NCBI GenBank assembly: GCA_020536535.1
Contig: JAHLWZ010000721.1
Span: forward strand, 1-64,000
From: Pelomyxa schiedti
Lineage: Eukaryota > Protista > Evosea
Reading direction: 5' to 3'
DNA: 64,000 nt
Positions 4,166 through 59,089 of the stretch are shown here, piece by piece. The first letter of the stretch is position 1, and each line of letters starts with the position of its first letter. Both the position numbers and the translations under genes were made by a program. The notes under the pieces were generated by a model. The model saw only the letters and a program-made list of their open reading frames with translations. It did not search any database and was not told the origin of the DNA.

Positions 4166-7014
4166 CTAATGATGTCGTGGAGACCTGCCAGAGGGGAGTG
4201 GGAATGGAAGGGATTGTTTAGTGACCCACACAATCGGGATGATGAAAAGGAACTCACCGGCTAGTCTCTTGGTTACGTGTGCTGTGAGGTTTTTCATGTG
4301 CCCCATTTTCTCGAATGTCATTTGGAAGCCGGGCGTCATGGTCAGGCTGGACAGAAGCTCCACAGGGCCTTCAAGCTGTAATTTCATTTTTAGACAATAT
4401 GAATAGGGGGTGGGTGGATAACTTGAGTCTGATAGTCCTCAAACAGATTCTTGTGTCTGGGTACAATCTCAGAGGAGACTCGGGCGGCAATTGGGCCGGA
4501 AAACATGTAAAATGCAAATACATAAGACCAAGCAAGTGATCGTCGAGCCTACATAACGAGTTGGGAAGAGGATTTGAACTAAAAAGGGAGTTTCTTACAC
4601 GCATTACAACTGCATGAGCCTCGTCCAGAGTACCCGGGAAAATTGCTACACCTAACCCCACATTAGTAATACTACTGCTTCTGTGGTATCATACCCAGTC
4701 CCATATCATTCAGCTCCACCTTTGCTCTTTCAATTTGTTCCAGAAGCTTAGGTGCTATCTTGCGTGACTGGTCATGAGCAATAAACCTAGAAAACTGTGA
4801 GAGGTGAAAACGCGTGGCCTTAGCACAACCTCTCGTAATAAAACATGTATCTCTTCAACGCAGTTTCTGAGTTCGAAGCCTCTTTAGTAGCTTCTTCATA
4901 ACGACCGCAGGTGTGGCCTTCAATAGAGGTCCATGTATGAGCAAAACCAGTTGCTGCTCCACATAACTTTGTTCTCTCAGAGTAGACCCACGGGAGAAGG
5001 GAAAGATACCCAACAAAAGTACTGTCCACAACGGCACGTCATGAGATTACAGCCATCTCTCTTTCTATAGTGTTGTTTATTTCTTGAGAACAGGTAGGAA
5101 TTATACGCACTCTATGACATTTCCGCATTTGGGACAACTTTTAGTATTACTGGAGAGCCTAAGTTCGGGTTGGAAAATAGATGTGCTCAAATAGAGAGGT
5201 ACCAATGTGCAGTTTCACTGTCATCTTCACATTTTTTCTTCCAGAGAGCCACCATCTCGCAGCTTGCTGGTGAATGAACAGAACTCAAACACATGAAACA
5301 AAACTCAAGTCCACACTTAAGATAATTAGTGGTCATATGCTAATGCTGCGAGATATACATTACAGGTAACTTCAACAGAGACCTTATCATACGAACTGAT
5401 TTCAACTTAAGGGGATGAGGGGGATTCAAGTAATTGTAGTACATACTGCAGTTTCCACAAAATGGGATGGAGGGACACCACTTCACGTGTTTGTTATCTT
5501 CAACATAAGAATCCATCATTTTACGACTGTACTTTTCAAGAGTATCTCTATCAACAAACCTGACAAGAAAAAGATTACATATATAGTTTGTAGATTGGCA
5601 CATGTCATACGAAGCAATGTTAGAGTCGTCAAAAAGTGCATTGCAATTTTTTGCCATACAATACAAAGACTTAGCTTCACCATCCCTTATCTTAAAGGAT
5701 ATATAGCTCTAAAGGAATTCTGCCGTTACAATTATATACTAGTATTAAAAGGAATTAGAAACGCGTACGGCCCAGCAATTGTTGCAAAATCGGTGCCCAC
5801 ATGACAACTGCAATGTATCCTCTCCATCAACAGTGTCAAAACAGACGCTGCAAGTAAAGCTACCAGTATACATTGAATTGATAATTCCAGCAACCCCTGC
5901 TCGCTAAAATAAGTGTTAGTGGGGTAACACCTATGTAATATTTACTTACACGGTAAATATCCTCCTTTCCCATCTCAAAAAACTGAGTGAGAAGTTTCTC
6001 TAAAAGAGAGTGTTGAGCTAGGATCATTTTTTTTTTAAAGTGGAAACCTTTGTCCCATTTATAGTGGCGTAAAAGAGTTCGGGCAAATGCTTCACTGATT
6101 GATAGAACTTCGCGAACCTGGTTCAAGTTTTTCATTTGTGCATCCATCAGTGCCTTGGAGGACAGAACACGGTAGTGCACCACTAGGAAAACGAAAACGG
6201 ATACTTTTAGAACAAAACAGGGAAGCAAGTCCGTACTGTTTTTTTTCTCCTCTGTCTCATCTACCTCACAGTAAGCATCTTCAGTAGTCTTCANNNNNNN
6301 NNNNNNNNNNNNNNNNNNNNNNNNNNNNNNNNNNNNNNNNNNNNNNNNNNNNNNNNNNNNNNNNNNNNNNNNNNNNNNNNNNNNNNNNNNNNNTAGTGCA
6401 CCACTAGGAAAACGAAAACGGATACTTTTAGAACAAAACAGGGAAGCAAGTCCGTACTGTTTTTTTTCTCCTCTGTCTCATCTACCTCACAGTAAGCATC
6501 TTCAGTAGTCTTCACATGTTAGCTTGAAGTTAAGGCAAAACTTCTAAAGAAGATACCATTTCTACAAGTGAGTTAAAAAAAACCATACACACAACAGCAA
6601 AAGAAAGAAACACACCAATAAACCACAAGCACAAACACAAACACCGCACATCGCACATCGCACACTTGCAGCCGACGTCGCGCCCCTGCGTGTCCCGCCG
6701 CCCCCGCTGCTGCTTCTACTTCGGCTGCTCCTACTCGTGCTGCAACTCGTCGCCGCCGCCGCTGCTGCTGCGGAGGAGGAGCAACTCTTTGGTGCAGCCG
6801 TCGTTGTCGTCGTGGAGCCCCCGCTGCTGCGGCCTTTGTCCCCTCCTCGGGAATCTTGGCCCTCCTCCTCGACTTCTTCCCCACCGTCGTCGCTGCCGTC
6901 GCCTTCCTCTTCTTCGTAGTCGCCGTCTTGTGCACCGTCGTCGTCGTCGATTACGGCGTCGTCGTCCTCGTACGCTTCGTCGTCCGCTGCGCCATCTTCG
7001 TCGCTGTCCTGCAT
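4166..7014 (-). CDS. ARIH1: Ariadne-family RBR E3 ubiquitin ligase (multi-exon)
   Basis: Acidic N-terminus; UBA-like 'VLSISEAFARTLLRHYKWD'; RING1; IBR 'SYVEDNKHVKWCP...FCFMC..HSPASC'; RING2 'NTKSCPKC', 'HTCGRY'; Ariadne domain 'ALKRYMFYYER', 'QLEGPVELLS'. Confidence 0.9.
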
Positions 7015-17933: not shown

Positions 17934-19290
17934 ATGTCGGGCACTACCAACCACCAAATTACGATCGTGTCCTGTGCCGTGGGACGCGGTCTCGATCCAG
18001 ATGCGCTGGGCACCTCTCTGGGCCCAGGGTTCTCAGTCTCCGCCGTTCCGCTCTCCCTCCTCTACTCCGCCATTGTGGGACCCACCGCCGCCACCGCCAC
18101 CTCGGCGTCGGCCAACGCAGACCAGCACGTGCTCCTACGTGCAGTCTCGATGTCGTCGTCTGTCGTCGTCGTCGACTTGGGGCCGCCTCTCCACCAGAAC
18201 CCCCCAGTCTCGTCCTTTGTCCACGGCTTCCTGCTTTCTCGACGGCGGCCCTCGACCGTCGTCCACTTCCACCCACAGACCCACGACGGCCCAGACGACT
18301 ACGACTGCGGCGGCGACCCGTCGGGCGCCAAGTTGGGTGCCGATCGGCGCAGTTGCTGCTCGCTGCCGAGCTGCACGTCGGGGATCGAGGCCTGCGCCGC
18401 CGCTTGCAGAGCGGCGGTTTCCGAGAACGAAGCCGATCTGGACGTGAAGCAGGGGAGCTACAGGAGCCTGATGATCAGGCCGAGGGGCTGTGACCCGTCG
18501 TTCTTGGATAGAACCCTGAGGAATTCTATCTGTGAGCACACATCTGGTGCTATTTATGTTTGGGTTCCTGTTGTTTCTCAGTCGTGCTCACATTACTTGG
18601 AAGTTGCTGTGAGGTGGTTTTCTTTTTTTCTCTGTTCCTTTAGTACCTTTTTTTTTTTTCCCTATCTCACTTGTTGCTTGCTGTAGGTATGGGTTAAAAC
18701 CGTGGCTGGCTACGCCAAAGTATCTTATATATTATAAATGGAACAAGATAGGAAAGGATATGGTACCAAGTGCAGCTACTTCCATTGCAGGTGCTCAAGC
18801 AGTGCTTCTGAGCCCAGACAAATCCAAGGTGCTCATGACCAAGGAGATACGGGTAAATGACCCAGTGTATCCCTATTATGACAAAAGCAGGCCTCCCACT
18901 GAGCACACCTGGCGTTTCCCAGGTGGTGCCGTCGACTTTGGCGAGTCTGATGCAGAATCAGTGATACGTGAACTACAAGAAGAACTCGGAATCGCGGTGC
19001 CATTGGAGGGTTTGCACCTCGTCAATACATACAACATGAAGAAGGCCCGGGCCTGGGGAGTTTTTGATCCTGGTGATGAGCCACTTTATGTCAATGACCA
19101 CCTGCAGGTATTTGTAGCCTTCCTGGATCCATCTGTACCACTGCAGCCTGAAGAGGCAGAGATTATTAATGCACAGTGGTTTCCGATATCTGAGGTACTC
19201 TCTGGTACACTACCAGGGGCTTCAGCCAGGACTACTTATCGCCTAAAAGAAGCACTTGACCACATAGAGAGAAACAACATTCACCCATGA
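17934..19290 (+). CDS. Nudix hydrolase (NUDT6-like organisation), two exons
   Basis: Nudix box WRFPGGAVDFGESDAESVIRELQEELGI; 'PSAATSIAGAQAVLL' and 'EIINAQW' as in NUDT6-type enzymes. Confidence 0.88.
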
Positions 19291-19830: not shown

Positions 19831-22800
19831 ATGGTACAGTTAGAGGATTTTTTTACTTCCCAAACAACTCGAAGGGCGCCGAAACGAGCAGTCTCTTGCA
19901 AAGTGACCAAGTTTTCACCAGAAGTTACGACTTTCAGCTTGAGAGGGTGTGTGCCGAGCTTGTNNNNNNNNNNNNNNNNNNNNNNNNNNNNNNNNNNNNN
20001 NNNNNNNNNNNNNNNNNNNNNNNNNNNNNNNNNNNNNNNNNNNNNNNNNNNNNNNNNNNNNNNGAGGATTTTTTTACTTCCCAAACAACTCGAAGGGCGC
20101 CGAAACGAGCAGTCTCTTGCAAAGTGACCAAGTTTTCACCAGAAGTTACGACTTTCAGCTTGAGAGGGTGTGTGCCGAGCTTGTGAATCCGCGGTGTACT
20201 TGTAGGAATTTGCGCATTGAATGTAAAATTGGGAGTGAGGGAGCAACAAGCATAGCGAGGGCACTCGAATTTAACAAGTCACTCGTATCCCTGAGTCTCA
20301 GAGGTATTTGCCTTCGTCCCATTGTGCGCTCTCTCTCTCTCTTTCCAAATGATGGGGGTTGACTCTCCAAAACACACACCCAGACAACAAAATTGGGAAC
20401 GAGGGAGCAACAAACATTGCAAGAGCACTTGAATTGAACAACTCACTCGTGTCTCTGGATATATCATGTGTGTTCCCATTGTGCTCTCTCAGTTCTCGAA
20501 TAATGATGGGGGTTGACTCTGCAAAAACAAAATCACACAGCCAACGCAATTGGGAGTGAGGGTGCAACAGTAATTGCGAGAGCACTCAAATTGAACAAGT
20601 CACTTGTGTCTCTGGATATATCAAGTGACTGTTCCCCTAGTTCAATTTTGCTCTCTCTCAATTCTCAAATGATGGGGTTGACTCTCTACAAAACAAAATC
20701 ACTCAGAAAACGAAATTGGGAGCGAAGGAGCAACAAGCATAACAAGAGCACTCGAGTCGAACAAGTTACTCGTGTATCTGAAGCTCTGTGGTGTGTGCCT
20801 TTATTTCATCTCTCAATCGAGTGATGGGGTTGACTCTCCAAAATACACAAAATCACACATCCAGACAACAAAATTGGGAGTGAGGGAGCAACAATCATTG
20901 GGAGAGCACTCGAATCGAACAAGTCACTCGTGTATCTGGATATATCATGTGTGTTCTCATTGTGCTGGTGGACTCTCTCCAAAACACAATCATACAGGCA
21001 ACAACATTGGGAGTGAGGGAGCAACAAGCATCGCGAGAGCACTCGAATTGAACAAGTCACTTGTGTCTCTGGATATATCAGGTGTGTCCACTCTTTCTCT
21101 CAATTCTCAAATGATGGGGTCGACTATCCAAAACAAAATCACAGACAACAAGATTGGGAGTGAGGGAGCAACAAGCATCGCGAGAGCTCTCGAATCGAAC
21201 AAGTCACTCGTATCTCTGGATCTCTGGGGTATGTCTCATTGTTCCATTGTTCTCTGTCTCTCAATTCCCAAGTGATGGGGCTGACTCTCTCCCAAAATAA
21301 AATCACCCAGCCAACGAAATTGGGTACCATGGAGCAACAAGTATCGCGAGAGCACTCAAAACGAACAAGTCACTCGTGTCTCTGGATATAGCATGTGTGT
21401 CCCCATTGTGCTCTCTCTCAATTCTCAAATGATGGGGTTGACAATTCAAAACAAAACCAATCAGTAAATGAAATTTGGGACATTTGGGGTGAAGCGGCCG
21501 CGAGAGCACTCGAGTTGAACAAGTCACTCATGTACCTGAGCCTCTTTGGTGTGTGCCTTTGTTTCATTGCTCTCTCTCCATTATTGAATGATGGAGTTGA
21601 CTCTCCAATACACAAAATCACTCAGGGAACAAAATTGGGAGTAGGGGTGCAACTACCATCGCTGGAGCACTCGAATTGAACAAGTCACTTGTGTCTCTGA
21701 ATCTATCACGTGTGTTCCCATTATGCTCTCTCTCACAATTCTTGAATGATGGGTTGATTCTCCAAAACAAAATCACCCAGTCAATCACATTGGGGATCCA
21801 GGAGCAACAAGTATCGCGAGAGCTCTCGAATCGAACAAGTCTCTCTTGTATCTGTTCCTAGGACGTGTGTTGACATCATCCCATTGACTGTCAATTCTAA
21901 AATGACTCTCTCCAAAACAAAATCGCCAGAAAACGAAATTGGGAACGAGGGAGCAACAAGCATTGCGAGAGCACTCGAATCGAACAAGACACTCGTGTCT
22001 CTGGATATACATAGTGTGTTCCCATTGTGCTCTCTCTGTCAATTCTCGAATGATGATTGACCCTCAAAAAAAAATCACCCAGTAAACTCAATTGGGAGTG
22101 AGGGAGCAACAAGCATCGCGAGAGCACTCGTGTTCAGCAAGTCGCTGGTATATCTGGATATATCATGTGTGTTCCCGTTGTGCTCTCCAGCAAGTCTCAA
22201 ATGATGGGGTTGACTCTCTCCAAAACAAAATCATACAGGCAACAACATTGGGAGTGAGGGAGCAACAAGCAAGTCTCAAATGATGGGGTTGACTCTCTCC
22301 AAAACAAAATCACACAGTCGACAAAATTGGGAATGAGGAAGCAACAAACATTGCAAGAGCACTCGAATCGAACAGGTCACTGGTATCCCTGGTTCTATCA
22401 AGTATGTTCCCATTGTTCTCCCTCTCAATTCCCAAATGATGGATTGACGCTCTACAAAACAAAATCGCCAGAAAACGAAATTGGGAACGAAGGAGCAACA
22501 ACCATCGCGAGAGCACTCAAATCAAACAACTCACTCGTGTCTCTGAATATATCACGTGTTTCCATCATTCCATTGCACACTCTCTCAAATGATGGGGGTT
22601 GACTCTCTCCAAAACAAAATCACCCAGATAACAAGATTCGTGGTGAGGGAGCAACAAGCATTGCGAGAGCACTTAAATCGAACAAGTCACTCGTGTCTCT
22701 TGAGATATCACGTGTGTGCCCCATTGCGCTCTCTCTCTATTCTCATATGATGGGGTTGACTCTCTCCAAAAACAAAATCACTCAGGCAATAAAATTGGGA

Positions 22801-25545
22801 GTGAGGGAGAAACAAGAATCGCAAAAGCACTCTAATCGAAATCGAAATCGAACAAGTCAGTGTCTCCGAATCTAGGAGGTATGTCTCTTTGTTCCATTGT
22901 TCTCTCCCAGTTCCCACACCACGGTGACTCTTCACCCACAGAGATACAACTCTTTTGGTTTACATGGGTTATCCATTCCACTTTGGGTGTTTCTCTTCTG
23001 GTCTTTCTTCGACCTCATAATTCGGAATTTTCGTGCTCTACTGTTGGTGGCACCAAATACCCTCTGAACTCGGACCTTTGGCTTGTCTCAGGAGGCCCAG
23101 AAAACACACTCTCTGATGCCCTTTTTGAAATTCCCATTGAGATTTTTGATTCACAGAATCGCCCTCCCAGTTATGGATATCCTTATTCCTCTATTTGCTG
23201 AATCTCCCCCTCCATCCCTCTCGAAACAGGGACACACCCGAATGCAATGGCAGTTGCCACAGGCAAAGAATACTTTGACTGTAACTTCACAAAATCACCC
23301 ACAAGTTCTGCCCAGACTCGCTCGACAATGCCAGAAACTCCAGTCGAAGAAATTCCTCAACACAACCAACAACCGTTTCCAGACTCCTCAATGACTTCGG
23401 CACCTGTAGAAAACACACAAACAGCCCCCACGTCTTTGCATTCTCCAAATTTGTCACTCCCGTTTGCCCAACGGTCATCAGCGGCATCTAAACTGGGCAC
23501 TCCTTCACAATCACCTGAAACACTCACCACCGAAATTCCACCGTCACTCCCAGGCAAACCGCCAACAATAGCACCAAAACCTGAAACCATTCTAATTCCT
23601 CAACACAACCAACAACCGTTACCAAACTCCTCAATGACTTCGGCACCTGTAACGAACACACAAACAGCCAGCACATCTTTGAATTCTCCAAAGTTATCAT
23701 TCACGTTTGACCCACCGTCATCAGCAAGAGCATGTAACCTGAACACTCCTGCACAAACACTAGAAAGTCCGGCAACAGCAGAAGAAATTCCTCAACACGA
23801 CCGACAACCGTTGCCAAACTCCTCAATGGCTTCGGCGCCTGTAACGAACACACAAGCAGCCACGGCCAGCACATCTTTGAATTCTCCAAAGTTATCACCC
23901 CCGTTTGACCCACCAACAGCATGTAAACTGGACACTCCTGCAACAGCAACACCATTTCAAATTGAAACAGCCAACGCAGAACAAACGTGTTGCTGGCTCT
24001 CATCTGTTGGTGCGGATGACGACTGCCTGAAAATCATCAGAGCGAACAAACTGAGAGGAAAAACACTTGCCAATTGCTCTGTGCAGAAATTGTGTGACCT
24101 TGGCCTCGTTTTTGGTGACGCGGAATTCATCGTCGGGGAAGTAAAAGCACTTTTATCATCAAGATGTCAAGAGCAACCATCTCAGATTCCCCTCAAGAAG
24201 TCGACAGGTTGGCAACTGTCGAGCATAGAAAATACTCACTTGGCCTCTCCCTGCTCTTTCTTCCTCTAATTTTTTTTTCAGTTGGAGCAGAACCTCTCTT
24301 CTGTGCTGAGATGAGATACAAGTGCTTTGCGTTTGTTGTTGGAAATCAATNNNNNNNNNNNNNNNNNNNNNNNNNNNNNNNNNNNNNNNNNNNNNNNNNN
24401 NNNNNNNNNNNNNNNNNNNNNNNNNNNNNNNNNNNNNNNNNNNNNNNNNNAAATACTCACTTGGCCTCTCCCTGCTCTTTCTTCCTCTAATTTTTTTTTC
24501 AGTTGGAGCAGAACCTCTCTTCTGTGCTGAGATGAGATACAAGTGCTTTGCGTTTGTTGTTGGAAATCAATGAATGTGAGGTGTCTTCCATTTCCCGAAG
24601 CTTCAAACTTTGTTTTTTTAAATTTTTTAACATCGAGGACAATGCAGTTCTTGAAGAACAAATGTCAATTTGAAGTGGTCTGCCACAAGAACATCCCAAA
24701 CATCGACGTGTTCAATGGCCACTTGCGAAAATTCCAATTGACACTGATCAAGCAACAAAGGGCAGGAAACAAGGTTTTGATTCTGTCTCCCTCTTTCCCT
24801 TGTGTTGTCGAATCTTGGGAATGACAGACATCCATCAGGTTGCAAGCATCTTTTATTTTGCCGGACACGGAAGGCAGGTGAACGGGCACAACTTCCTGCT
24901 GATGACAGAAGACGAGGCTGCTTTCGAGGAGGCCGATTTTGCCGCCATGGAACTCAAAGCACCGATGGTTGGCACTGTGATTGATGGAATGAAGAAGTAC
25001 TCTGACCTGACAATCGGCATTCTTGATGCTTGCCGCCAATCCAATGAGAAGGGTGGCTCCAAGGTGAGTTCAAGTTCTTCCTTTCACATTCAGCCACACA
25101 CTGATCTTCTTCTCACAAATTGGCCCAGTCACGTGGTGGATCTGAGCCGACACAGGAACTCCAACTGACGAAAGAAGATTTCCGAGCTGGGTGCATTTTG
25201 ATTTATCCAACAAGCCCAGGTTTTTTTCCCCTCCTTTGGGTTTCACCCTGAATCAACGTTTCACTTCTTTGTAACGCACAGGGAGGACAACACAGGATGT
25301 TTGCACTCTCCCAAACAAGCAGAACCATGGATTCTTCACTGGTTGTTTCCTCGAAGGTTGCTTCGCCTCCGTCTCTCTTACATCACTCACTCAACCACGC
25401 GCTCCCAGTTGTCGAGAATGCAGAACCCGGCACATCGTGGAACGACGTCGAGTCCGCCATCATTCAGATTGTGCAGACGGAATCTCATGACGAGCAGACA
25501 CCTTGGGTCTCAAAGAGTTCTGGACTTCGCTTTGCTCTCTTCTGA
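19831..25545 (+). CDS. LRR-SAM-caspase(C14) protein, copy 1; carries lesions (possible pseudogene, exon-skipped gene or misassembly)
   Basis: ATG|intron|GAETSS; 18 LRR units; SAM (WLSSVG...LRGKTL...LCDLGLVFGD); FYFAGHG and ILDACR. Truncated exon at 22239-22270, in-frame TAA at 22833 and a deletion/TGA near 24571. Confidence 0.8.
20223..22878 (+). repeat. Tandem exon-intron LRR array, about 155-bp units (84-nt exon + homologous intron), 18 units
   Basis: Consensus xNxIGSEGATxIARALExNKSLVSLDIS (28 aa, RI-like LRR). Introns gtgtgt..ccattgtgctctct..aaatgatggggttgactctccaaaacaaaatcac.cag. Confidence 0.95.
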
Positions 25546-25647
25546 GAACAATCAACTTACTTGTTGAAACGTTTAACGGAAACAAAAAACGAATTTGGTA
25601 CCAAAGGTGTGCGGATTCGACCGGAGGATTCGAGACCGGCGCAGAAG

Positions 25648-28600
25648 ATGGTTTACGGACCCTTTTTTTTTTTAAACGCCCCCAACTGACTCGAAGGGCG
25701 CTGAAACATCCTCGCGGGGCAGTCTCTTGCAAAGTGATCAAGTTTTCACCAGAGGTGCCAACTTTAACCTTGGGAGGGTGTGTGCCGAGCTTGCGAGTCC
25801 ACTCTGTACTTGCAGGCACCTGCACCTTGACTGCAAAATTGGCCACCAGGGAGCATCAAGCATTGCGAGAGCACTCGAAGTGAACAAGTCACTCGTGTCT
25901 CTGAATCTCAATGGTGTGTGCCTTCATCCCATTGTGCTCTCTCCCAGTTCTCAAATGAACGAAATCATCCAGACAACGAAATTGGGAACGAGGGAGCAAC
26001 AAACATCGCTGGAGTACTCGAATTGAACAAGTCACTCGTTTCTCTGGATATATCATGTGCGTTCCCATTGTGCCCTCTCAGTTCTCGAATAGTGATGGGG
26101 TTTACTCTCTCCAAAACAAAATCACACAGCCAACGCAATTGGGAGTGAGGGTGCAACAATCATTGGGAGAGCACTCGAATCGAACAAGTCACTCGTGTCT
26201 CTGGATATATCAGGTGACTGTTCCCGTCGTTTCTTTTTGCTCTCTCAATTCTCAAATGGTGGTGACTCGCCAAAGCCAACAACATTGGGAATGAGGGAAC
26301 AACAAGCATCGCGAGAGCACTTGAATTGAACAAGTCACTCGTGTATCTGAATATATCATGTGTGGCTCCTTTGGTCTCTCCATTTTCAAATGATGGGTTG
26401 ACTCTAAATCACTCAGGGAACTCAATTGGGAGTAAAGGAGCAACAATCATCGCGGGAGCACTCGAATTGAACAAGTCACTTGTGTCTCTGGATATCCGGA
26501 GTGTGTTCCGTCGCCCCATTGGGCTCTCTCAATTTCCAGTTATCAACGATGGGATTGACTCTCTCCAAAACAAAATCACCCAGGGAACTCAATTGGGAGC
26601 GAGGGAGCAACAACCATCGCGAGAGCACTCGAATTGAACAAGTCGCTGGTATCCCTGGATCTTTTATGTGTGTTCCCATTGTGCTCTCTCTCAATTCTCA
26701 AATGGTGATTGAATCTGCAAAACAAACATCACTCAGACAACGAAATTGGGAGTGAGGGCGCAACAATTATCGCGAGTGCACTCGAATCGAACAAGTCCCT
26801 TATGTATCTGTGTATATCATGTGTGTTCCCATGGTTCTATTGTGCTCTCTCAAATGGTGATTGACTCTCCAACACAAAATACCAGCCAACAAAATTTGGA
26901 GCGAAGGAGCAACAAGCATTGCAAGAGCACTCGAATCCAACAAGTCACTTGTGTCTCTGGATATATCATGTGTGTTAGCCTTGCTCTCTATCTCTCTCAA
27001 TTCCCAAATGGTGTTTGCTTCTCCAAAACAAAATCACTCAGGGAACTCAATTGGGAGTGAAGGAGCAACAAGAATTGCAAGAGCACTCGAATCCAACAAG
27101 TCACTTGTGTCTCTGGATTTACGAAGTGTGTTCCCATTGTGCTCTCTCTCTCAATTCCCAAATGACGACTGACTCTCAAAATCACACAGCCAACACAATT
27201 GGGAGTGAGGGAGCAACAGGCATCGCGAGAGCACTCGCATCGAACAGGTCACTCGTGTCTCTGAATCTCGGGGGTATGTCTCTTTGTTCCATTGTGCTCC
27301 GTCTCAATTTTCAAATGATGATTGACTCTCAAAAAATAAAATCACACAGCCAATGAAATTGGGAACGGGGGAGCAACAAATATTGCGAGAGCACTTGAAT
27401 CGAACAAGTCACTTGTGTCTCTGGATATATCATGTGTGTTCCCATTGTGCTCTCCCTCAATTCCCAAATGATGGGGTGACAACATCACTCAGACAACAAA
27501 ATTGGGAGTGAGGGGGCGACAAACATCGCCAGAGCACTCGAATTGAATAAGTCACTCGTGTCTCTGAATATATCGCGTGTGTTCCCGTGGTTCCATTGTC
27601 TCTCTCAAATGATGGTGATTGACTCTCTCCAAAACAAAATCACCCAGATAACAAAATTGGGAGTGAGGGAGCCAGAAGCATCGCGAGAGCACTCGAATTA
27701 AACAAGACACTTGTTTCCCTAGATATATCACGTGTGTTCCCATCGTTACATTGCTCTCTCATATGGTAGTGATTGACTCCAAAACAAAATCACTCAGGCA
27801 ATGACATTGGGAGTGAAGGAGAAACAATAATCACAAGAGCGCTCGAATCGAACAAGTCACCAGTCTCTCCGAATCTAGGAGGTATGTCTCGTTGTTCCAT
27901 TGTGCTCTCCCAGTTCCAACAAAGTGGTGACTCTTCATCCACAGAGATACAACTCTTTTGGTTTACATGGGTGATACACCCCACTTTGGGTGCTTCTCTT
28001 CTGGCCTTTCTGCAACCCCAAACTTCTGCATTTTCGTGCCCTAGTGTTGGTGGCACCAAATACCCTCTGAGCTGGGGCATTTGGCTTGTCTCAGGAGGCC
28101 CAGAAAACACACTCTCTGATGCCCTTTTTGAAATTCCCATTGAGATTTTTGATTCACAGAATCGCCCTCCCAGTTATGGATATCCTTATTCCTCTATTTG
28201 CTGAATCTCCCCCTCCATCCCTCTCGAAACAGGGACACACCCGAATGCAATGGCAGTTGCCACAGGCAAAGAATACTTTGACTGTAACTTCACAAAATCA
28301 CCCACAAGTTCTGCCCAGACTCGCTCGACAATGCCAGAAACTCCAGTCGAAGAAATTCCTCAACACAACCAACAACCGTTTCCAGACTCCTCAATGACTT
28401 CGGCACCTGTAGAAAACACACAAACAGCCCCCACGTCTTTGCATTCTCCAAATTTGTCACTCCCGTTTGCCCAACGGTCATCAGCGGCATCTAAACTGGG
28501 CACTCCTTCACAATCACCTGAAACACTCACCAGTGAAATTCCTGCAACAAACCCTCCACCTGCAGCCACCACACCGAGACCCTCACTCCCAAGTAAACCT

Positions 28601-30014
28601 CCAACAGTTGGACGAAAACCTGAAAGTAACGGAACACCATTTCAAATTGAAACAGCCAACTCAGAACAAACGTGTTGCTGGCTTGAATCTGTTGGCGTGG
28701 ATGACGACTGCCTGAAAATCATCAGAGCGAACAAACTGAGAGGAAGAACACTTGCCAATTACTCTGTGCAACAATTGTGTGACCTTGGCCTCGTTATCGG
28801 TGATGCAGAATTCATTGTGGACGAAGTCAAAGCCCATTTATCATCAAGATGTCAAGAGCAATCGTCGCACAGTTCCCTCATCAAGTCGACAGGTTGGCAA
28901 ATGCTCTCCGATCTCAACTTTTTCTCACTTTTTTTTCCCAGTTGGAGCAGAACCTCTTTTCGGTGCAGAGATGAGCTACAAGTGCTTTGCATTTGTTGTC
29001 GGGAATGAATCCTATGGGAATCGTTCACTCAAAAACTCCATCAATGATGCAGAATCTATTTGTGAGGTCTCTTCCATTTCCCAAGTCAAACTTTGTGTTT
29101 TTGACATCGAAGACAATGGCAGTTCCTGAAGAACAAATGTCAATTTGAAGTGGTCTGCCACAAGAACATTCGAAATCTCGATGTGTTTACTAGCAACTTG
29201 CGAAAATTTAAAGAGACACTGCTCGAGCAAAAAATTGCAGGAAACAAGGTTTGATGGTGGCACCCTTTTCAAGCTTTGGGGTGACCAGACATCAGGTTGC
29301 AAGTATATTTTATTTTGCAGGACACGGGAGGCAAGTGGAAGGGCACAACTTCCTGCTGATGACATGTGACGAGACTGCTTTTGAGGAGACCAGTTATGGC
29401 CGCATGGAGCTCAAAGCACCGATGTTTGGCACTGTGATTGATGAAATTAAGAGCTACTCTGACCTGACAATCGGCATTCTTGATGCTTGCCGTCTATCCA
29501 AGGAGAAGAGTGCCACGGCGGTACAGATAATCTCTTTTATTCATATTCAGCACACTGATCTTTTTTCCAAATTGGCCCAGTCGCGTGGGTTTGGAATTAG
29601 CAAAGAACCCCTCTTGGCGAAAGAAGAAGATTTCCGAGCTGGGTGCTTCTTGATTTATCCAACAAGTCCAGGTTTTTCCTTTGTGCCTTCCCCTATTATT
29701 TTTTTTTCCCTTTAAACATCGCCGCACACTCATCTGACTCATGTACAGGAAAGGGAACACAGGATGTTTGTGCTCTCCCAAACAGGAAGAACCATGGATT
29801 CTTCACTGGTTGCTTCCTCGAAGGTTTCATTCCCTGTTTCCCCAGCCCTCCTGACAACTGTCACCACACATACTCAGTTGTCGAGAACGCAGAACCCGGC
29901 ACATCGTGGAACGACGTCGAGTCCGCTATTATTCAGATGGTGCAGACGCAATCTCATGGTAAACAGACGCCATGGGTCTCAAAGAGTTCTGGACTTCGCT
30001 TTGCCCTCTTCTGA
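25648..30014 (+). CDS. LRR-SAM-caspase(C14) protein, copy 2; apparently intact
   Basis: ATG 25648|intron|GAETSS; 14 LRRs, all open in phase 1; SAM at about 28640-28840; caspase fold AFVVGNESY..SLKNSINDA, FYFAGHG (His codon 29323), ILDACR (Cys codon 29488), YPTSPG, NHGFFT, QTPW. Confidence 0.9.
25834..27881 (+). repeat. Tandem exon-intron LRR array of copy 2, 14 units
   Basis: Thirteen 84-nt exons (25973 to 27798) plus the LRR in the preceding exon; introns homologous to those of array 1. Confidence 0.95.
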
Positions 30015-30040
30015 TGTGAATTACTTCAGAGGTAAAATGA

Positions 30041-30096
30041 ACGGAATCTCATGACGAACAGACACCATGGGTCTCAAAGAGTACTGGACTTCGCCT
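30041..30096 (+). pseudogene. Relic duplicate of the caspase-gene 3' end
   Basis: acggaatctcatgacgaacagacaccatgggtctcaaagagtactggacttcgc repeats the terminal exon (TESHDEQTPWVSKS.GLR). Confidence 0.75.
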
Positions 30097-30399
30097 TGCT
30101 TTCTGCCGAGGCAACAAGCCACTTTTGTAAAAACTGCACTGTACATAAAATGGAAGCATTATTTAAACCATTGTAGCTTTTGCGGTGGCCAAAAGAAAAA
30201 AAATCAAGAAGGTCTACACATCAAATAAATTTTTAAGATGGAAAACACAGCCTACAATTTACATTACCACGATGGTGGTGGCAGAAACAATCTTGTAGAA
30301 AATACGATTTCAGTAAAAGCCACTCTGTATGGAGTATTTAGGAAAAAGGAGAGATGTATGTACGTGAGAATTTACTTTATTTTAGTACAGGACCCGCGA

Positions 30400-33300
30400 A
30401 GCTGCCCATCTAGTATAACATCAAAATTGCGTTCTGAAGAGATTTCCACCCAAGCAACAGGAATGGAGGTGCCCCTTCTTGCTCGTTTCTTTAACCAAAA
30501 TTAGCATCTATTCAGGCCGTACTTGTTCAAAGAAATGCACACCACGTCACTTGGATCACAGTGGAGTTGAAGCAGCATGAGATGCTCTGTACAACCAATA
30601 TCCTGTTTCATCTCCGCAGAATTCACTCTCAGGCTTTCGGTCATTGTCTGTTTCACAACTCCAGATAGATCCACCTTGATGTTAATAGTTAACAATTGCG
30701 AGAGGAAAACATTGCAGATTTTCTAGGATTTGGGGATTATCGTACAATTGCATATTTCAACTCGACTGTAAAGAAGGAAGTGTTCTTTCCACGGGAAGAG
30801 TGTGAAACAGAACCAGGCGTAATGATTGAACAACTTTTCAGGAATGGGTGAGTGTAACAAGGTTGATGCGGACTTTCGCACTGACAAACTAAAATCGGGA
30901 TCTTTGATTCAATTACCAAAAATGTAATATAAAGAGAAACATACATTTAGTGCATAAGTCGCCTCTCGGAAGAAATTTTCTAACGTCGAACGCACAAGCG
31001 ATGCCGGATTCGCAATTTTACTGCCTATAAATGCAGTTTGAGGTCCATGTCTCAAGTCTTCAGCATCCGGGGCCTCAATATTATCTTGCAATGTGGGCTT
31101 AGGAGCTGGGCGAATTGGAGAATCTTCCAGGGTTTCCACTCTGGAAGTGATTAATGTTTGCTGGAATAAAAGCAACAAGGTTCAACCTTTTCCCTCTCGG
31201 TAATGGTGGGAACACCGGCAATATCTCCATCATTCCTTTGCACATGCCCACAACGTACCGACAGTACCTTGATGGAATTAGAAGGAGACTATTAGCCATT
31301 GGGGTGTAAACCAGGCATCTTGCTCACATAACAGCTGACAATAAAAGGATTCTGGAGCAGGAAGAAGATAAAAGATAATATCTACAAAAATGTTGAGTGA
31401 AAATTTGTACGGGGTTGGAGCCAACCTTTGTCAGAAAACAGTGAATTGCACTGCTGTCTAAGCAATAAATACGAGTTGAGCACAGTGAAAATTAACGCGT
31501 CAGTTCCAATCACACCCACACGTACAGCTTTCATCTGGGTGAGTGAGAGCTTTGTTTTCAGAATTTGAAAACAAGGGTGAGATTTTATGGCATCCTGCTG
31601 TGAATTGATGGATGCAGTTGATGTTGGAACCGATGGAGATGATGGAGCTTTAGCAGGGATAGTAGGGGGAGACTCACTACAAGTGATATCCCAAAATTTG
31701 AAACTAAGTGGAGGTGGCCTAACATCTCAATCAGAAAGAGTTAAAGAAAAGAAGAGGTACAGCATATATTGTAACAGTGGAGGTTTAAATGCTTGTCCCA
31801 CATTCATGCACCCAAAAATTTTGTCTTTCAGATGATTTAATTTTACAAAACAAAATTGCTTGGCGTGATTTGGAGGCCTGCCAACAACTTATTTAATTAT
31901 CAGGAAGGCTGGGAAAGTATCACTGCATACATGCTTTCTGCCTTCTGCGTTATTTCAACTGCTTCAGTGAAAAATCTATCTACATCTGCCATCAAGCAAT
32001 GAGATAGACCAAGTAAATCAGTATCGATTTTCAAAACCCGAGACAGCAGATCTATTTTTGTTTTCACGCTTTTGTTCAAGTTTCATATATTTCCCAAAGT
32101 TACATTATTGTAATTAAAGTAAAATAATTGACAAAACTTACTTGCTAAAATGCTGCAGCGTATTTCGTGTGGGGATGGTGACCATGGTTGCCAAAAACTT
32201 GACATGTCCCTAATTCCCACGGCCCACCCGTTTTTCCCTTCAATGAGAACATCAGTATCATTTTGTTCCATTTGACTTTGGTGGATGTTATTGGGGGAAA
32301 AAAATGTGGTTTAGTACACAATCAATGGAACTGGTGGTGGGAACATACGAGCTGGTATTAGATAGAATTTGTGGTGCTTCTTGGAAAAAGAAATTTCTCA
32401 TGTAAGTTCCGGGTATAGATTCTTCCCTGCAATAGTACACCAATAAGAGGCAAAGCAGTTACAAGATAAATACATGGCGAGAATATGTAGAAGTTCACTG
32501 GCAAGTTTGGAATAAGGGTTTTGCATAGCATAACAAAGTTTCAAGGCGTCCGCAATAGAGGCCGCTGTAACACCGTCGATGAAGGGACACTGCAAGTAAG
32601 TTATAACGTGCTGGGTGATTGCAGTGTCATACACTATGTAAAATTATCCTCACTAAGTGCAGTAATGCCAGAAGTCTTGAACCTTTCACAAGAATTTCTG
32701 GTACTAGAAGTGCAATTATACCATTGACAATGGATTGCCAGGTGGACTGCTTGCAAAGCTGGTTTCTTATGTAAGGAAGTGCAAGATACTTACAGGCTGA
32801 GTGTTAGGGAAAAAAGTGAGTTGAGGATGGGGTCCCGGGAATAAGAGAGAAAAGGAATGTTTGGTTGCACACCACTGCAAGTCTTTTTGAGTTCGATTGA
32901 AATCCGTCTTGTCAATTTGACTCCAACGCAATCTGACACCCAATCCCAAAGAGGATTGTTTGTATCTCCAATCAGTAACAAAACATTGACACGTTGTGAG
33001 AAAACTGTCATGGAGCTAAGTGATGATACTTCCACCCATCTGTCCATCACATTTTTGAATGTTGAATCAAGTGGATTGAACGGTGCAAACATTGCCACAA
33101 AATACAGAGACCGAACAAGAGTATCTTCGCCAACTCCGCCGCCATCACCCCATGCCAATGTTATCGCTCCATTCCCCAAAGTCTGTGATCCAGACTGCAA
33201 CGAGGAAGACGAGGCGGAATTGGACAGCGAATTAGAGGACGAACTAGAAGCCAATGCAGAACCAGAGCCCTGCGAGCCAATTCCACCACCAGGGTTGGAA

Positions 33301-34193
33301 TCAGATACCCCAGAAGAAGAAGAACCCCCAGAACTAGAAGCAGAATTAGAAGCCGCAGAAGCGGCCGCAGAGCCCTTAGCCTCACTCGCGTCCCTGTCGC
33401 CGGAATCGAAGAGACCAGCCACCACGTCCCCCTCGTCCTCCTCCTCGTCTCCCCCCTCGCCGCCCCCCTGCTCCTCTCCCTCTCCCTCGCCCCCTCCTCC
33501 CCCCTGCTCCTGCTGCAGCGTCATCAGCTGCGGGCCCCACACCATGGGGCTCATGTCCCGCAGCCCCACCAGGGCGCTGGCCAGGTCCACCACCCCGCTC
33601 GCCGCGCTGTTGCCGCAGAAGAACATGGAGGAGGAAGACAGCGGCGGCGGCGCAGCAGAGGACGACACCGAGTCGGAGCGCAGCGAGGGCGACGGCGACG
33701 GCGACGGCGTGGGGGTGGGCGAGGGCGAGGCCGAGGGCGACGGCGACGCCAGGTGGGCGATGGGCAGGCCCAGGGCGACGGCGCGCTGGACGACGGCGGC
33801 GCCCAGCACCGCGGCGAGGTACGACGTGGCCGCGGAGGGGTGCGAGTGCACCGCGTGCCAGAGGCGGCGGTACCGCTGCGGCGTGTTCACCAGCCCCCGC
33901 ATCGACAGGAACTGCTGCACCAGCCCGCACATCGCCCACTGCGCCGCGGGGCCGGACCCCCCCGTCCCGGCGCCCGTGCCCCACCCGCCGGACCCCGGCG
34001 ACGACGGCACCAGCGAGACCGACAGCGCCGTCTCCGCAGACACGGGCGGCGCCGGCGGGAGCAGCGCCTCGTACTCCAGCAGCGACCTGCGGGACGGCCT
34101 GTGGCTCGTCGCGATGGCCGGGCTCGGTGGGGCCAGTGCCGCGGGCGAACCCCCTCGTTTCCTTGATGTAGGTGTGCCTGGTGGATCGACCAT
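30400..34193 (-). CDS. Large multi-exon hypothetical protein with Ser/Pro/Gly/Glu-rich N-terminus; 3' end approximate
   Basis: Long first exon (ORF 32790-34328, ATG 34193 MVDPPG) followed by minus-strand exons 32398-32634, 32083-32271, 31099-31299, 30909-31178, 30737-30946. No family recognised. Confidence 0.6.
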
Positions 34194-34339
34194 GTCTCGC
34201 GCCGCTTCGTTTTGTCTTCTTCTTTTCTTTTTTTGATTCCAGATAGCAGATAGAAAACAGAATTGATAGATAGTGTACACAACAGAGAGGAAGAGGGGTT
34301 GGTTGGGAGTATGTCTGTAGGTATGCATGGATGCGTGTA

Positions 34340-43813: not shown

Positions 43814-44253
43814 AACAATCAATTTTGACATCATACCACCCCACTGCATATTATCACATCAAGAACCACACACCAGTATGGTGCACCAAACAACGTGCTC
43901 CGTATGTAGCAACCTCACTTATGTAATCATAAGTACATGAAAAACCAACTCGGAACAGATTTTCTAGTTTTTTTTTCCCCTGTTGATTTCCAACAACACG
44001 GTGAAGCGTGCCGGGGTCTCAAAAAAACCGTGAAAGTGTGGTGATGATTCTTCATCGGTTTGTATTGTCGCTTGTGAGGGTGTTTGTGGGAGCTCCGCGG
44101 TTCCTTGTCCTAGGGTCTAGTCACTGTGAGAAAGCCCGGCAAACCTCTGGGCGTTTGGGAAATTCCATATTTCCCCGCCTTTCACTTCGACGACTTACAG
44201 AAAACAAAGACAAACATTTTTTTAAAAAAGAAGGCACCACCTCAAGATCCGAC

Positions 44254-45366
44254 ATGTCCGCAGACTACGACTACATCTTGTTGGGACGGAAGAACTGGCG
44301 TCCTCATGCCGTGCGGGAAGATATCTTTGCAGAGTTGCCGTACCCCTCAGAAGTGTATGTCCAGTCCCCGCTCATCTCCATCTCCTTTCTGCACACTGAT
44401 GTCCGCAGGGAGGAAATAGACCGTCGCGCGAAAAACTTGGTTTGGTACAAATTCAAATCATTAGAATTGCTCAACCACACGCTACATCATCCCGCTGCCG
44501 CTCGTTTGCGCCTCGAGATTGCCACGGATTATTCTAAGAAATGGAAGAAGTACATGGTGAAAGCAGGATTGGGACTATACAAAGACCCTGCCAATACTAC
44601 TACATCACACCAAGTGCCTGCCCCTTCACCAGCGCCTCTTATTTGTTCAACCTCACAGCAGCTTAAAGACGCCCCTGCCACTGTTTTACCACCTGCCTAC
44701 ACAGACACTACTGGTCACGAACCTCCAAAGAGTTATGGTTGTTCCACAAACCAAGATGTAGTGACTACCTCAACTCCGTCGACAACCTTTGCAGAACCAA
44801 CAAGAAGTGGTCCTGATGTCACCTTTGGGATTGATGATTCCACCAAGTTGACACATTCTAGTTGTGAACCACCCTTGGCTGGGCGTAAAAGGAAGATGTG
44901 CACACTAGATTCACATTCCTCTCGGGAACTGGAAGGAGAAGAGCCAGGAAAGGGATCCTCAGCATCGCACTATGTGGTGTCCACTTCACAAGTCAGAGTA
45001 ACCCCTGCACCCACCCCAACCCAGCTGCTATCACGTGGCGAAGTACTTGCAAAATCTGGTGCCCCTCACCTTGCTCCTACACCAAACAAAAACATTGAGG
45101 CTATGTCCGGCACTGAGGTTTCCTGTGGATTTACTGAGGATCCCACAGTCAGGGTCGTTGAAGCAGGTTATTGTTTGTCACCTGTATTTGGAGTTCTAAT
45201 TTGTACCATAGCTCAATTCCCTCAAATTTCTCCTGAAGTAAACACTTATGCTGTGACAGGCACTGATCCCGCACCCTCCGCAGTTGCTACCCATGGTATC
45301 ATAGTAGGTTATTGGGATGGTCCCCTACTACACCCACCAGAACCGCTTATAGAAGAGCAGGAATAA
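44254..45366 (+). CDS. Hypothetical protein, single exon
   Basis: 370-codon ORF from MSADYDY; helical-looking N-terminal 110 aa followed by a Pro/Thr/Ser-rich region. Confidence 0.65.
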   Translation: MSADYDYILLGRKNWRPHAVREDIFAELPYPSEVYVQSPLISISFLHTDVRREEIDRRAKNLVWYKFKSLELLNHTLHHPAAARLRLEIATDYSKKWKKYMVKAGLGLYKDPANTTTSHQVPAPSPAPLICSTSQQLKDAPATVLPPAYTDTTGHEPPKSYGCSTNQDVVTTSTPSTTFAEPTRSGPDVTFGIDDSTKLTHSSCEPPLAGRKRKMCTLDSHSSRELEGEEPGKGSSASHYVVSTSQVRVTPAPTPTQLLSRGEVLAKSGAPHLAPTPNKNIEAMSGTEVSCGFTEDPTVRVVEAGYCLSPVFGVLICTIAQFPQISPEVNTYAVTGTDPAPSAVATHGIIVGYWDGPLLHPPEPLIEEQE

Positions 45367-53232: not shown

Positions 53233-56200
53233 TTACGCTAGCTTTTTTTCTTCAGTGAAAATATCCTTGAAGTGTTCCCAAAGGTACTTGAAGAGTGATG
53301 CGAAGAATGCAGTTACATCCGCCACTATAATTTGGAGGTGATTAAAAGGAAAGGAGTACCATAAAAAGCATAAAAAAACAACATTAAAACAGAAGGAGGC
53401 AAAAGAGGATGGAGGATGACACACAGTTGATACAGAGGTCATCAGTACAGAATGGGTGGGACTTAAATAGTACACCCTCGATGTGCAACCTGAAACTAGT
53501 GTTCATGATATCAGCAGAGTCAAGGCTGAACATTATTGTCATTTCGTTGATGCGCAACAAGTTGCGTGGGTCAAGTGCATCAAGGAAGTCAACAAAATCA
53601 GCAAAGCCTTCAAGAGCACCCTGTGCCCTCAAGCAACAAGCACGTGCTTGCAGAAGTTGCTTTCCAAGGTCACCATTGATGAGCTCTTTGAAGGCCGCAA
53701 CCACTTTTTCCCTGCTTTCTTCACGTGTGATATACATGTGGCCCAGCACTGCTTTTGCTTGTGTGAGGTGCATGTATGCTGCGCGGCCAAGCTCTTGAAC
53801 TTCTCTGCTTTGTGTCTGGCTTAGTTGGGGGTAAGAGTTGCAAACTGTTTGGCCGGGGTTGTAAGGTTGGATTGCAAAACACAACTCCTGAAATAAATCC
53901 TGAAGAGCGGTGCGTCCAATGATGGTGCTTACCTTCGAGAAGAAGGCGCTAAGGTGGGAGATTCCTCCCCCCATGAGAGCATAAATACTGGAAATGAATT
54001 GCCTTGTTTCTACGGCAATCTTTGATGGTGGAATTGACGGAATTTTGAACTGTTTTGTACTTTGTAGTAGCTGGTTCACTTCTTGTCGATTGTGTGCAGG
54101 CAGAAAAGAAAGGAAGGAAAGAATGACTGGGGTCAACTTCCTGAACACTTCAAGGTGGTTGTTCAGTTCCGATGCCTTGAAAGCAGCTGTAACAACCCTG
54201 GCAATCGTATCGATAATGGACCAACAGCAGGATTGAAGCTCCTCACATGTTCTGCTGTACTGGAGCAAAGATAGTGCTTTCTCAATGCAAGAAATAAAAG
54301 GAGAGTCAGTGGTGCTTATGTGTGAAAACTGAACGAGAAGTTTGATGCACGGTGTGCCATTCAGCTTTGAGATGTAGCTCCGAATGAGTACCAACTGAGT
54401 CTTGGAAAGCTCAATGAGCTTTTTGAGGTTCTCCGAGGAAGAGAGTGCCTGCGAAGCAGCAACAAAACAGTTTGTTGCTCGCACCACGTCGTTGACTGAG
54501 GCCTGTCCCTGCAATGCGGCACATGCGGCCAGGAATTCCTGCATCTTCTCGTTGCCGATGATATTATCTATGCCAGCGAGGGTCGCTTGGATAAGCCTCC
54601 CCACACAGTCTAATGCGGAGTTAACAAGGAGGTTCACTGATTGCAGGAGGTCTTGCACGTGATCTGGCTGTTGCTCAAGGTTGGCCTGCAGTTTCTTTGC
54701 TGCATTACTTGCATCTTCTAACTCATTAGATGCTTCAGTGACCTCTTTTTCTCGTTGTTCTTGGAGTTTGCGTAAAGCATCACCCAATTCCTGCAAAGAC
54801 TTGCATTAGCGTAAAGGTTTTCTTGTTGCAAACATACATTTGATTTGGAGTTCAGGCTATTGCTTGCCTGATTGACTGCACTCTGGGCGCCCTCTACCGC
54901 GGATTTAGCCTTATTTACTGCCACGTGATACCCCGCAGCAACAGCCCCAGCAACGGGCAGTGCAAGAAGTACTGGGGGGAAAATCCAACCTAAAATTGTG
55001 GCTGCACCTGCACTCCCCACCGCCACTCTTGATTGGAAGAGGGAACGTTCGGCATCTTGCAAATCCTTTTGTGCTTTGGCCAACTTTTGTTGCTCATTCT
55101 GTGTCATTGTCAAATTTTGGGGGAAACACTTGAACTACAAACCTCAAGAGCACACAGGAGAGGTGCGACAGCAAGGTCTTTTTTCCTGCTTTCTTCTTCA
55201 ATTATCTTACTCCACGACGTCTCTGCAGCCCGAATTTTAGCTTTGCAGGTATCCATGTCTGAAACTGCTTTGGACACTTTCTGTACGAGCTCCTCAGTGA
55301 TTCCAGACTTGTATGAAGCTGCTTCCAGGTTTATGAGAAGTGTGTTGATCTCAGTGAAGTCCTGTTGAATCACCTCAATGTCATTACGGCGCTGCTTGAC
55401 ATCAGCCATGAACAACTCATCCCGTTCAATGAATTCATTGCAGGCAGCAGTGATCTTCCTCCGAAAAGTATCCTCTGCAACCCTGACCTTTTGTTCTGCG
55501 ATACCAATGTCCGTCGCATTTGCGCGCGCAGCATTCCTAGCAAACTGAAGGACACCATCGCTTACAGTGTCCGAGGTATCCTTGAATGACCCCACAAACT
55601 CAATCTTGATTCCTGCCAGATCTCTGATGTTGCCTTCGAGCTTGCATTTTAGGTCGAGCATGAAATTGCCAATGTAAAGGTTGCCTTCGAGGTCGATACC
55701 ACTTGAATCAATCTTCACGAACACCCCAATAGAGAAGATGTCAGCCACCTCCAGAGCACCATCAATCAGGAATTCTGGTAGTTTGCTCGTGCTCACAAGG
55801 AGGTGGAACTTTGGGTCAGCACCATTCTTGCCGTGCACTTTCAGGGGGCCAATCTGGAAGTGCTCCACACTCCCATCAACCTGGCAGAGGTTGGTGCTGA
55901 GGCGTGCATAAACTTCTGCCTTTTTCGAAAGGATGGTTGCTTGACAGTGGAACGAGAAGCCTTCCTGAAACTTTAGTGCGCCAATGTAACCACCATTTGG
56001 CCCGGCAAGGCAAACTGATAGGTTTTGAAAGGAGAGAACATTTGGCGATATGTTTGTGAGAGAATCGGGGAGGATATTACCCATCAGTGAAGTAATTCCA
56101 CTGAACAGGTCTGCAAGTGAAAGGCCTTGAATGGCGCAAACAAGAAGCATGTCATTGGGGTTTGGGCTTAACATGAATCCTAGCTTCCCTGTGATATGGC

Positions 56201-58219: not shown

Positions 58220-59089
58220 TCATGGAGGAAATTGAAAACCCTCAAGCAGCTGGTGCACCACAAGCAACTGTACAGTGTTAACTCCTGTTGGGCCAGAGAA
58301 AAGTCTTGCATTCACTGGCTTTTTTGCCATGTGGGCAAGAACGTCTCGCCAGTTAGTAAAATTGCACAGTTCAGCACCAACACCTGTAAAATACAAGCGG
58401 AAGGCGGAGTGCAATAAATCTGGCCTCACTTCTTCCAAGAGCGCAGTTGAAAGCCAAACCCGTTTTGGTGGTTCCCCATAGAAGTATCCAGTGCAGTAGG
58501 TCTGACCCCATATCCCAGAGTTAAGCCTGTTTAGTTCAACAAAAGTCAAGAAGCCAAAGAAATCAGTGATGGCTTCATCTGGGGTGGACAGTGTTTGGAG
58601 ATCCCCAAGTGACACACCCTGCAAACCGTTGCCCAAGTGTGACTGAGAGTGGAAGTATTCATGTATGATGGTAGATGCAATCTTCGGTTCTCCACCGGGC
58701 TCATATTCTGCGTTGTGAGCGTTCAGGTATATCCTGCCCAGGAGTGTAAAGGCTGGTGGGCACTGGCTCTGCCTCAGGAGTTTGATGTCATCAAGTTCTT
58801 TACTCAACTTTGTTTTTTGTTCTGGGGCAGAAAATTTGGCCTTTGCCACGTCTTCAAGTCTTTTTCGATAAGCACACAGGTAGTGGCTGATGTTTAGAAC
58901 GTACACGACTACGTTGTTTGGGTTGACATATTCATGATCAGTGGTAAAATCGAGTTCCTGCAACACAGGTGCCTCTGGAGGATTGGCATACTGTGCAATA
59001 AGAACCGCTGCAGTTCTAGCTATGTATGGCTTGATTCTCGCATACGCGTCGCGGGCCATTTCCTTCACTCGCTCTGCTGGCGTGTTCAT
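58220..59089 (-). CDS. Intronless zincin-like metallopeptidase (HEXXH + distal Glu)
   Basis: GRIYLN...STIIHEYFHSQSH...PDEAITDFF...Y; ATG 59089 (MNTPAE). Confidence 0.75.
   Translation of the reverse strand: MNTPAERVKEMARDAYARIKPYIARTAAVLIAQYANPPEAPVLQELDFTTDHEYVNPNNVVVYVLNISHYLCAYRKRLEDVAKAKFSAPEQKTKLSKELDDIKLLRQSQCPPAFTLLGRIYLNAHNAEYEPGGEPKIASTIIHEYFHSQSHLGNGLQGVSLGDLQTLSTPDEAITDFFGFLTFVELNRLNSGIWGQTYCTGYFYGEPPKRVWLSTALLEEVRPDLLHSAFRLYFTGVGAELCNFTNWRDVLAHMAKKPVNARLFSGPTGVNTVQLLVVHQLLEGFQFPP

Follow-up and report, generated by a model that had tools for sequence, protein, structure and literature searches.

Tandem Pelomyxa schiedti genes predicted to join leucine-rich repeats, a SAM domain and a MALT1-like paracaspase in a single chain

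SARM1 carries ARM repeats, a SAM oligomeriser and a proximity-activated TIR effector in one chain (PMC7688312). In the paracaspase MALT1, an acidic S1 triad (Asp365, Asp462, Glu500) sets arginine (Arg) specificity, and activation requires dimerisation (PMC4357240). The LRR-ROCO and NB-ARC-TPR candidate receptors of Ectocarpus, the former named for leucine-rich repeats (LRRs), are exon-shuffled, with one repeat per frame-preserving exon and variable concave residues (PMC3341825). We examined a 64,000-nucleotide (nt) window, the whole of positions 1 to 64,000 of contig JAHLWZ010000721.1, from the anaerobic amoebozoan Pelomyxa schiedti, which hosts numerous cytosolic prokaryotic endosymbionts and for which a single-cell assembly exists (52.4 Mb, 5337 scaffolds, SPAdes, k up to 121) (PMC8887013). 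The window holds two head-to-tail paralogs on the (+) strand, copy 1 (19831..25545) and copy 2 (25648..30014), in which an LRR array, a SAM domain and a protease follow one another.

The model of copy 2, built from coordinates, has 23 exons, with GT-AG introns throughout, and encodes 992 amino acids (aa), the sole stop being terminal. Its parts run in the order Met-Gly-x-x-x-Ser (MGxxxS) start, 14 LRRs of the ribonuclease inhibitor (RI) type, an orphan segment of ~100 aa, a Pro/Ser/Thr linker, SAM and protease. The joined model was used for frame checks, and searches were run with exon references or database proteins. The features of copy 2 are as follows.

25648-25650 and 25697-25913, (+): start; an ATG-only micro-exon, then an exon with G-A-E-T-S, the N-cap and the first LRR; fits the MGxxxS myristoylation consensus, and the start matches the public model.
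25973..27881, (+): LRRs; thirteen exons, all of 84 nt and phase 1-1, each encoding one RI-type LRR of 28 aa; 14 LRRs with exon 2.
27945..28300, (+): orphan ~100-aa segment; exon 27945-28172 and the start of the next exon, with a low-confidence beta-rich model.
28301..28633, (+): Pro/Ser/Thr-rich linker, sharing an exon with SAM.
28634..28855, (+): SAM domain, mid-loop basic and start of helix 5 acidic.
28942..30014, (+): MALT1-like C14B protease in six exons, stop codon at 30012-30014.
29046, 29323, 29482, 29488 and 29763, (+): protease residues Asp769, His827, Asp880, Cys882 and Asp928, respectively.

A preliminary description, read by eye from the letters, had proposed this anatomy (MGxxxS, RI-type LRRs, SAM, a His-Cys protease and no NTPase), and it stands in the open 992-aa model, which matches the public one. 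The same description was right that the gene has more than 20 exons; the gene is present in the public annotation as ‘Protein NLRC3’. That entry (KAH3758966.1, 857 aa) is the copy 2 gene and the top database match, 100% identical; it agrees with our model in MG start and domain order, and skips five LRR exons. Public gene models were built with Augustus, PASA and EVM. Pfam on KAH3758966.1 returned LRR_6 (E 2.6e-35) and Peptidase_C14 (E 1.9e-20), with SAM_2 only at E 0.014; there was no NACHT or NB-ARC Pfam match, and a Walker A motif was not found in the 992-aa model.

Very probably LRR, SAM and protease are made as a single chain, because the introns are short and canonical (46-83 nt, leaving no room for intergenic space between the three parts), the frame is open, nine loci are colinear, and public models agree. 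The MGxxxS start is predicted in both copies and in the paralog models P0003, P0030 and P0005, and hinges on the predicted ATG micro-exon; an MG start is found in 7 of 13 family models. An alternative frame for exon 2, which takes 25780-25816 as an intron and would delete the myristoylation motif, was considered and ruled out, for the MG frame is uninterrupted, agrees with the public model and is kept in paralogs.

The protease had been described as caspase-fold with His and Cys intact. The His827-Cys882 dyad is indeed intact, but the enzyme is paracaspase-like, and is by defining features neither a true caspase nor a metacaspase. A family profile (hidden Markov model) matched MALT1 at E 1e-28, caspase-1 at 1e-10 and metacaspase at 7e-7. 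For the predicted structure (mean predicted local distance difference test score, pLDDT, 84.8), MALT1 was again the top match (Foldseek E 7e-13, VIA Z 25), and metacaspases scored under both MALT1 and caspases (Z 13-19 versus 25 for MALT1), an indirect test of the metacaspase fold with its extra strands and p10 region. In the profile alignment Asp769, Asp880 and Asp928 fall on MALT1 Asp365, Asp462 and Glu500; the catalytic motif is D-A-C-R with an acidic pocket, and the caspase Q-A-C-x-G motif and basic S1 pocket have no counterpart here. Since the acidic S1 triad is retained, a paracaspase-like enzyme of Arg specificity is predicted, not a caspase, and we regard an active Arg-specific protease as likely. 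Across the family the dyad and the S1 residues are kept, and between the two copies the ratio of nonsynonymous to synonymous substitution (dN/dS) comes to 0.42. The L4 loop, after the catalytic cysteine, holds a T/S-R-G motif that is likewise conserved in the family and may be a self-cleavage site. The Pelomyxa protein resembles MALT1 most closely in sequence profile and fold, in dyad and S1 triad, the MALT1 fold being dimer-activated; it differs in having LRR, orphan segment and SAM in front and in being only ~17% identical, and it implies no CARD-BCL10 partners. Neither the death domain nor the Ig domains of MALT1 were found in the Pfam scan or structure models of the Pelomyxa protein.

The SAM domain of copy 2 falls under the Pfam cut-off; the call was confirmed by fold and by the paralogs, 14 of 15 of which match SAM_2, so that all three domains named beforehand (LRR_6, SAM, Peptidase_C14) were recovered. 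The model is a five-helix fold (pLDDT >90) with Z ~10 and a root mean square deviation of 1.5-1.9 Å over ~69 residues to the SAMs of PHC3, Scm and DGK-delta, and dN/dS between the copies is 0.27. In 15 of 15 paralogs the mid-loop carries positive charge (+2 to +5), and helix 5 begins with an acidic stretch (-2 to -4). Polymerising SAMs usually show the opposite charge arrangement; that of Pelomyxa is apparently reversed and still complementary, which suggests a surface suited to head-to-tail self-association. Activation of the protease by SAM is somewhat more probable than the contrary. The SAMs of SARM1 are among the fold matches (Z 9.5), and the two proteins are alike in joining a repeat module, SAM and an effector in one chain; in Pelomyxa, however, LRR stands for ARM, one SAM for two and a protease for the TIR NADase, and homology is limited to the SAM fold. 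By defining features the Pelomyxa protein is neither a SARM1 nor a MALT1; most likely it would resemble SARM1 in how it is laid out and MALT1 in how it cuts.

In the genome, the protease core exon and the SAM each gave 28 matches, with 24 SAM-protease pairs adjacent in the same order and four SAM matches having no protease-core match nearby; the unit is thus present at 24 or more loci. Paralog fronts were assigned from search coordinates, public models and 1.5 kb of flanking sequence. The front is of the LRR type at nine loci, colinear as LRR-orphan-SAM-protease and including a third copy on the same contig; four of them have single-chain public models. The other fronts are Sel1, MORN (two), TRAPPC13-like with Ras, ankyrin with a PARP regulatory domain, a second caspase-fold domain and an unnamed domain; across different fronts the SAM is 40-92% identical. 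In a tree that did not include MALT1 or Dictyostelium sequences, family proteases grouped in one long-branched clade (98/97), within which the LRR subfamily made up a subclade (100/100), and metagenomic, probably bacterial, relatives fell outside the family on a base without resolved order. The closest non-Pelomyxa sequences are bacterial caspase-family (orthocaspase-like) proteins, one named from Microcystis, whose domain is ~25-30% identical (E 1e-6 to 1e-3). They share the motif set and the habit of swappable partners (Sel1, TPR, PEGA, SH3) (PMC6426788); they differ in that no SAM or RI-type LRR partners were seen, and the Pelomyxa genes are rich in introns and sit on a long branch in a clade to themselves. 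No SAM-protease fusion outside Pelomyxa was found in database or atlas searches, the word searches being bound by length range and exact words, so that distant cases could escape; nor was any paper on this architecture found. The earlier impression that the architecture was unrecognised is thus upheld: it is an undescribed architecture built of known parts, in a lineage-specific Pelomyxa family.

Several other members and relatives were noted. An unnamed domain of ~120 aa, the second such, precedes linker and SAM in about eight members and has no Pfam match (P0031, P0012, P0013, P0008; L026, L027, L029, L034, L038, L042, L044, L045). L038 (G000:C388) is a broken member, with one protease exon on the strand opposite its neighbours (local inversion). 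P0006 (G000:C694) branches early; its SAM is of the canonical type (Pfam E 1e-14), it has a pair of C14 domains, and it is possibly an ancestral form of the SAM-protease unit. P0015 (L004/L041, G000:C406) is a model of 2008 aa in which a dynamin-like and a kinase-like domain accompany two caspase-fold domains, and SAM is absent; the first caspase-fold domain has a caspase-like A-A-C-R-G motif, and the second belongs to the Pelomyxa paracaspase family. L001, L002 and L007 (G000:C511) and L003 (C165) are separate caspase-fold genes, some with Q-A-C-R-G-like motifs, which lie outside the family in the tree and possibly encode true-caspase-like enzymes in an amoebozoan.

The LRR fold is of RI type, matching RI, NOD2 and NLRP. 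The likeness to NLRs (NOD2, NLRC3, NLRP) lies in these 28-aa repeats and in the proposed LRR-to-caspase-fold logic; the Pelomyxa protein is nonetheless not an NLR by defining features, having neither NACHT/NB-ARC nor CARD/PYD, and holding in the same chain a protease predicted to be Arg-specific. The public name ‘Protein NLRC3’, which derives from the RI-type LRRs alone, is misleading. Each internal LRR is one 84-nt phase 1-1 exon, and repeats can therefore be gained, lost or skipped in frame. For most LRR units the other copy offers no close match at the corresponding position (best 74-84%, one pair 91%). Among paralogs the span from start exon to orphan exon is ~0.4 to 2.9 kb, and the number of repeats varies from about 2 to 17. 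Nonsynonymous (pN) and synonymous (pS) differences were 0.12 and 0.33 in the LRR framework, compared with 0.33 and 0.35 at five exposed strand positions. The codon split by the intron, just ahead of the ladder Asn, holds 15 different residues at 30 junctions; its first and second positions are saturated (0.76, 0.74) versus 0.28 at four-fold sites, and by parsimony these two positions changed 10-11 times on a tree, where four-fold sites averaged 4 (P 0.003-0.008, uncorrected). These values suggest diversifying selection on the junction codon, and variation in LRR copy number together with the hypervariable junction residue suggests a recognition role. The Ectocarpus candidate receptors likewise have one repeat per frame-preserving exon, variable repeat number and clustered paralogs; they differ in exon length (72 nt, versus 84 nt here) and in output (GTPase/NB-ARC, versus SAM-protease), and in Pelomyxa the most variable residue is the intron-split codon.

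The orphan segment had no match in Pfam, in the atlas or among non-Pelomyxa sequences, nor did it match the look-alike segment of P0009. A transmembrane helix was considered and is weak as a candidate (maximum hydropathy 1.41, and beta strands in the low-confidence model); the segment is probably not transmembrane.

Copy 1 differs from copy 2 in several respects, and its features are as follows.

19831..20303, (+): start; ATG micro-exon 19831-19833 and exon 2 at 20096-20303, with an artefactual gap (19964-20063) between.
20384..22878, (+): LRR array; 15 exons of 84 nt are intact, one, from 22239, is truncated, and the last, of 93 nt (22786-22878), has an in-frame TAA at 22833.
22942..24207, (+): orphan segment, longer Pro/Ser/Thr linker and SAM (23949-24170).
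24503..25545, (+): protease exons (P0002); His and Cys intact, first exon 47 nt short at 24571/24572.
19964-20063: gap 1, with duplicate 19843-19963 = 20064-20184.
Between 24350 and 24451: gap 2, with duplicate 24230-24350 = 24451-24571.

The two arrays had been given 14 or 18 LRRs; 14 is right for copy 2, but in copy 1 the intact LRRs number 16, beside a truncated LRR exon and the stop-bearing last one. Skipping the truncated and TAA exons keeps the frame, which is then open up to the protease. The copies are ~79% identical in the protease region, and a 453-bp tract is identical (copy 1 23077-23529 = copy 2 28080-28532). All four runs of N in the window are bordered by an exact 121-bp duplicate, the k-mer length of the assembler, and both gaps in copy 1 are therefore assembly overlaps with flanks that are continuous once the duplicate is collapsed; missing DNA at these gaps is ruled out by the same duplicates. 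The public annotation cuts copy 1 in two at a gap (KAH3758964.1, KAH3758965.1). The first protease exon is 78 nt in copy 1 versus 125 nt in copy 2, and the shortfall begins exactly where the gap overlap ends. In DNA run X2 a contig was identical to 24452-24571, continued with ~50 other letters (a length as in copy 2) and resumed at 24575; contigs of runs X1 and X3 ended at 24571, and an exact match to that stretch was found at no other locus. Since the X2 contig continues past 24571, the 47-nt deletion is doubtful as a certain lesion; the gap probably marks an assembly branch, with a full-length version of the protease existing.

Elsewhere in the window, an intronless Nudix hydrolase open reading frame (ORF; PF00293, E 2e-15) lies directly upstream of copy 1 (18760-19290, (+)), and a short tandem duplicate of the end of the last exon of copy 2 stands right behind its stop codon (30030-30105). 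Long ORFs (329-957 aa) without Pfam match lie at 32790-34328, 44008-45366, 55110-57983 and 58220-59209. The two further 100-N gaps, at 1178-1277 and 6294-6393, also have exact 121-bp duplicates at their flanks, and gene models spanning them will come out falsely split or duplicated.

As a whole explanation, we give an even chance to a cytosolic, probably myristoyl-anchored, single-chain receptor-protease. The front module would restrain clustering until its target is bound; the SAMs would then associate head to tail, the basic mid-loop of one meeting the acidic end helix of the next, and the assembly would bring the protease domains into the dimer needed by a paracaspase fold. The protease would thereupon cut after Arg, possibly first at its own L4-loop T/S-R-G. 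The LRR front would be a fast-diversifying recognition surface, most likely for foreign molecules of prey, symbiont or pathogen. Of the sensor-protease immune circuit originally envisaged, the part on induced proximity fits, because MALT1 is dimer-activated and the charged surfaces of the SAM are complementary and conserved; but an Arg-specific output is predicted, and LRR is only one of several interchangeable fronts. An immune role is plausible, at somewhat less than an even chance.

The following points weigh against the receptor-protease reading. The single RNA run gave just fragments of the gene, with LRR-to-LRR splice signs from some family member and no joint linking LRR, SAM and protease. 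The junction-codon signal was not significant versus the fastest synonymous site; codon 10, equally variable, is on the helical face of the LRR, and the repeats are subject to gene conversion, which bears on the selection signal. SAM polymerisation is predicted here from charge, and many SAMs are heterotypic adaptors. Axonemal structural proteins were among the top LRR fold matches, and the MORN, Ras and TRAPPC13-like fronts suggest non-immune inputs, membrane or trafficking. The last two points, with the ankyrin-PARP regulatory front and the MG start of 7 of 13 models, would suit non-immune signalling proteases, whose fronts bind the membrane, trafficking and cytoskeletal proteins of the amoeba itself and target a SAM-clustered paracaspase there, as in vacuole handling or encystment. 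We think this rather unlikely; about 2 to 17 repeats in close paralogs and a hypervariable surface residue are unexpected of housekeeping adaptors, and no orthologs were found outside Pelomyxa.

The SAM could instead be a heterotypic dock, such that members with different fronts co-assemble or bind a separate SAM scaffold, and activation is a network event, not a one-protein circuit. Heterodimer-forming SAMs (CNK/HYP, Scm/Sfmbt) match the Pelomyxa SAM as well as polymer-forming ones do, four SAM matches stand without a nearby protease core, and the similarity and shared charge pattern of SAMs across fronts would make cross-assembly possible; yet one SAM bears both complementary surfaces, as self-association needs, and we consider docking improbable as the explanation. 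Very unlikely, in our estimate, is a turnover-prone repeat family of little function, in which LRR exons multiply by unequal crossing-over and copies decay, or LRR and SAM-protease are transcribed apart. The stop and truncated exon of copy 1, several truncated public models, the poor RNA coverage and the 453-bp identical tract (recent conversion) are what such a family would leave; but copy 2 is open across all 23 exons with no intron longer than 83 nt and so no intergenic space between parts, purifying selection acts on the LRR framework, the SAM and the protease, and dyad and S1 residues are kept across the family.

SAM-driven activation is established for the TIR enzyme SARM1, and dimer activation for MALT1; no described protein joining a SAM directly to a caspase-fold protease was found. 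A family of 24 members with one output and many fronts offers a compact test of whether SAM clustering could stand in for CARD/death-fold filaments, and the SAM-protease unit, at ~350 aa, is easily assayed. More speculatively, and as a possibility we hold to be doubtful, the family could be a set of innate receptors, each a single chain, that arose independently in a unicellular amoeba. The switch for the paracaspase would be SAM polymerisation in place of an NTPase or a death-fold filament, and LRR specificity would be diversified as exon gain, loss or skipping rewrites an intron-split, ligand-facing codon; such a repertoire may police cytosolic endosymbionts or prey. The family is in this respect a candidate handle on non-self recognition in a symbiont-laden protist.

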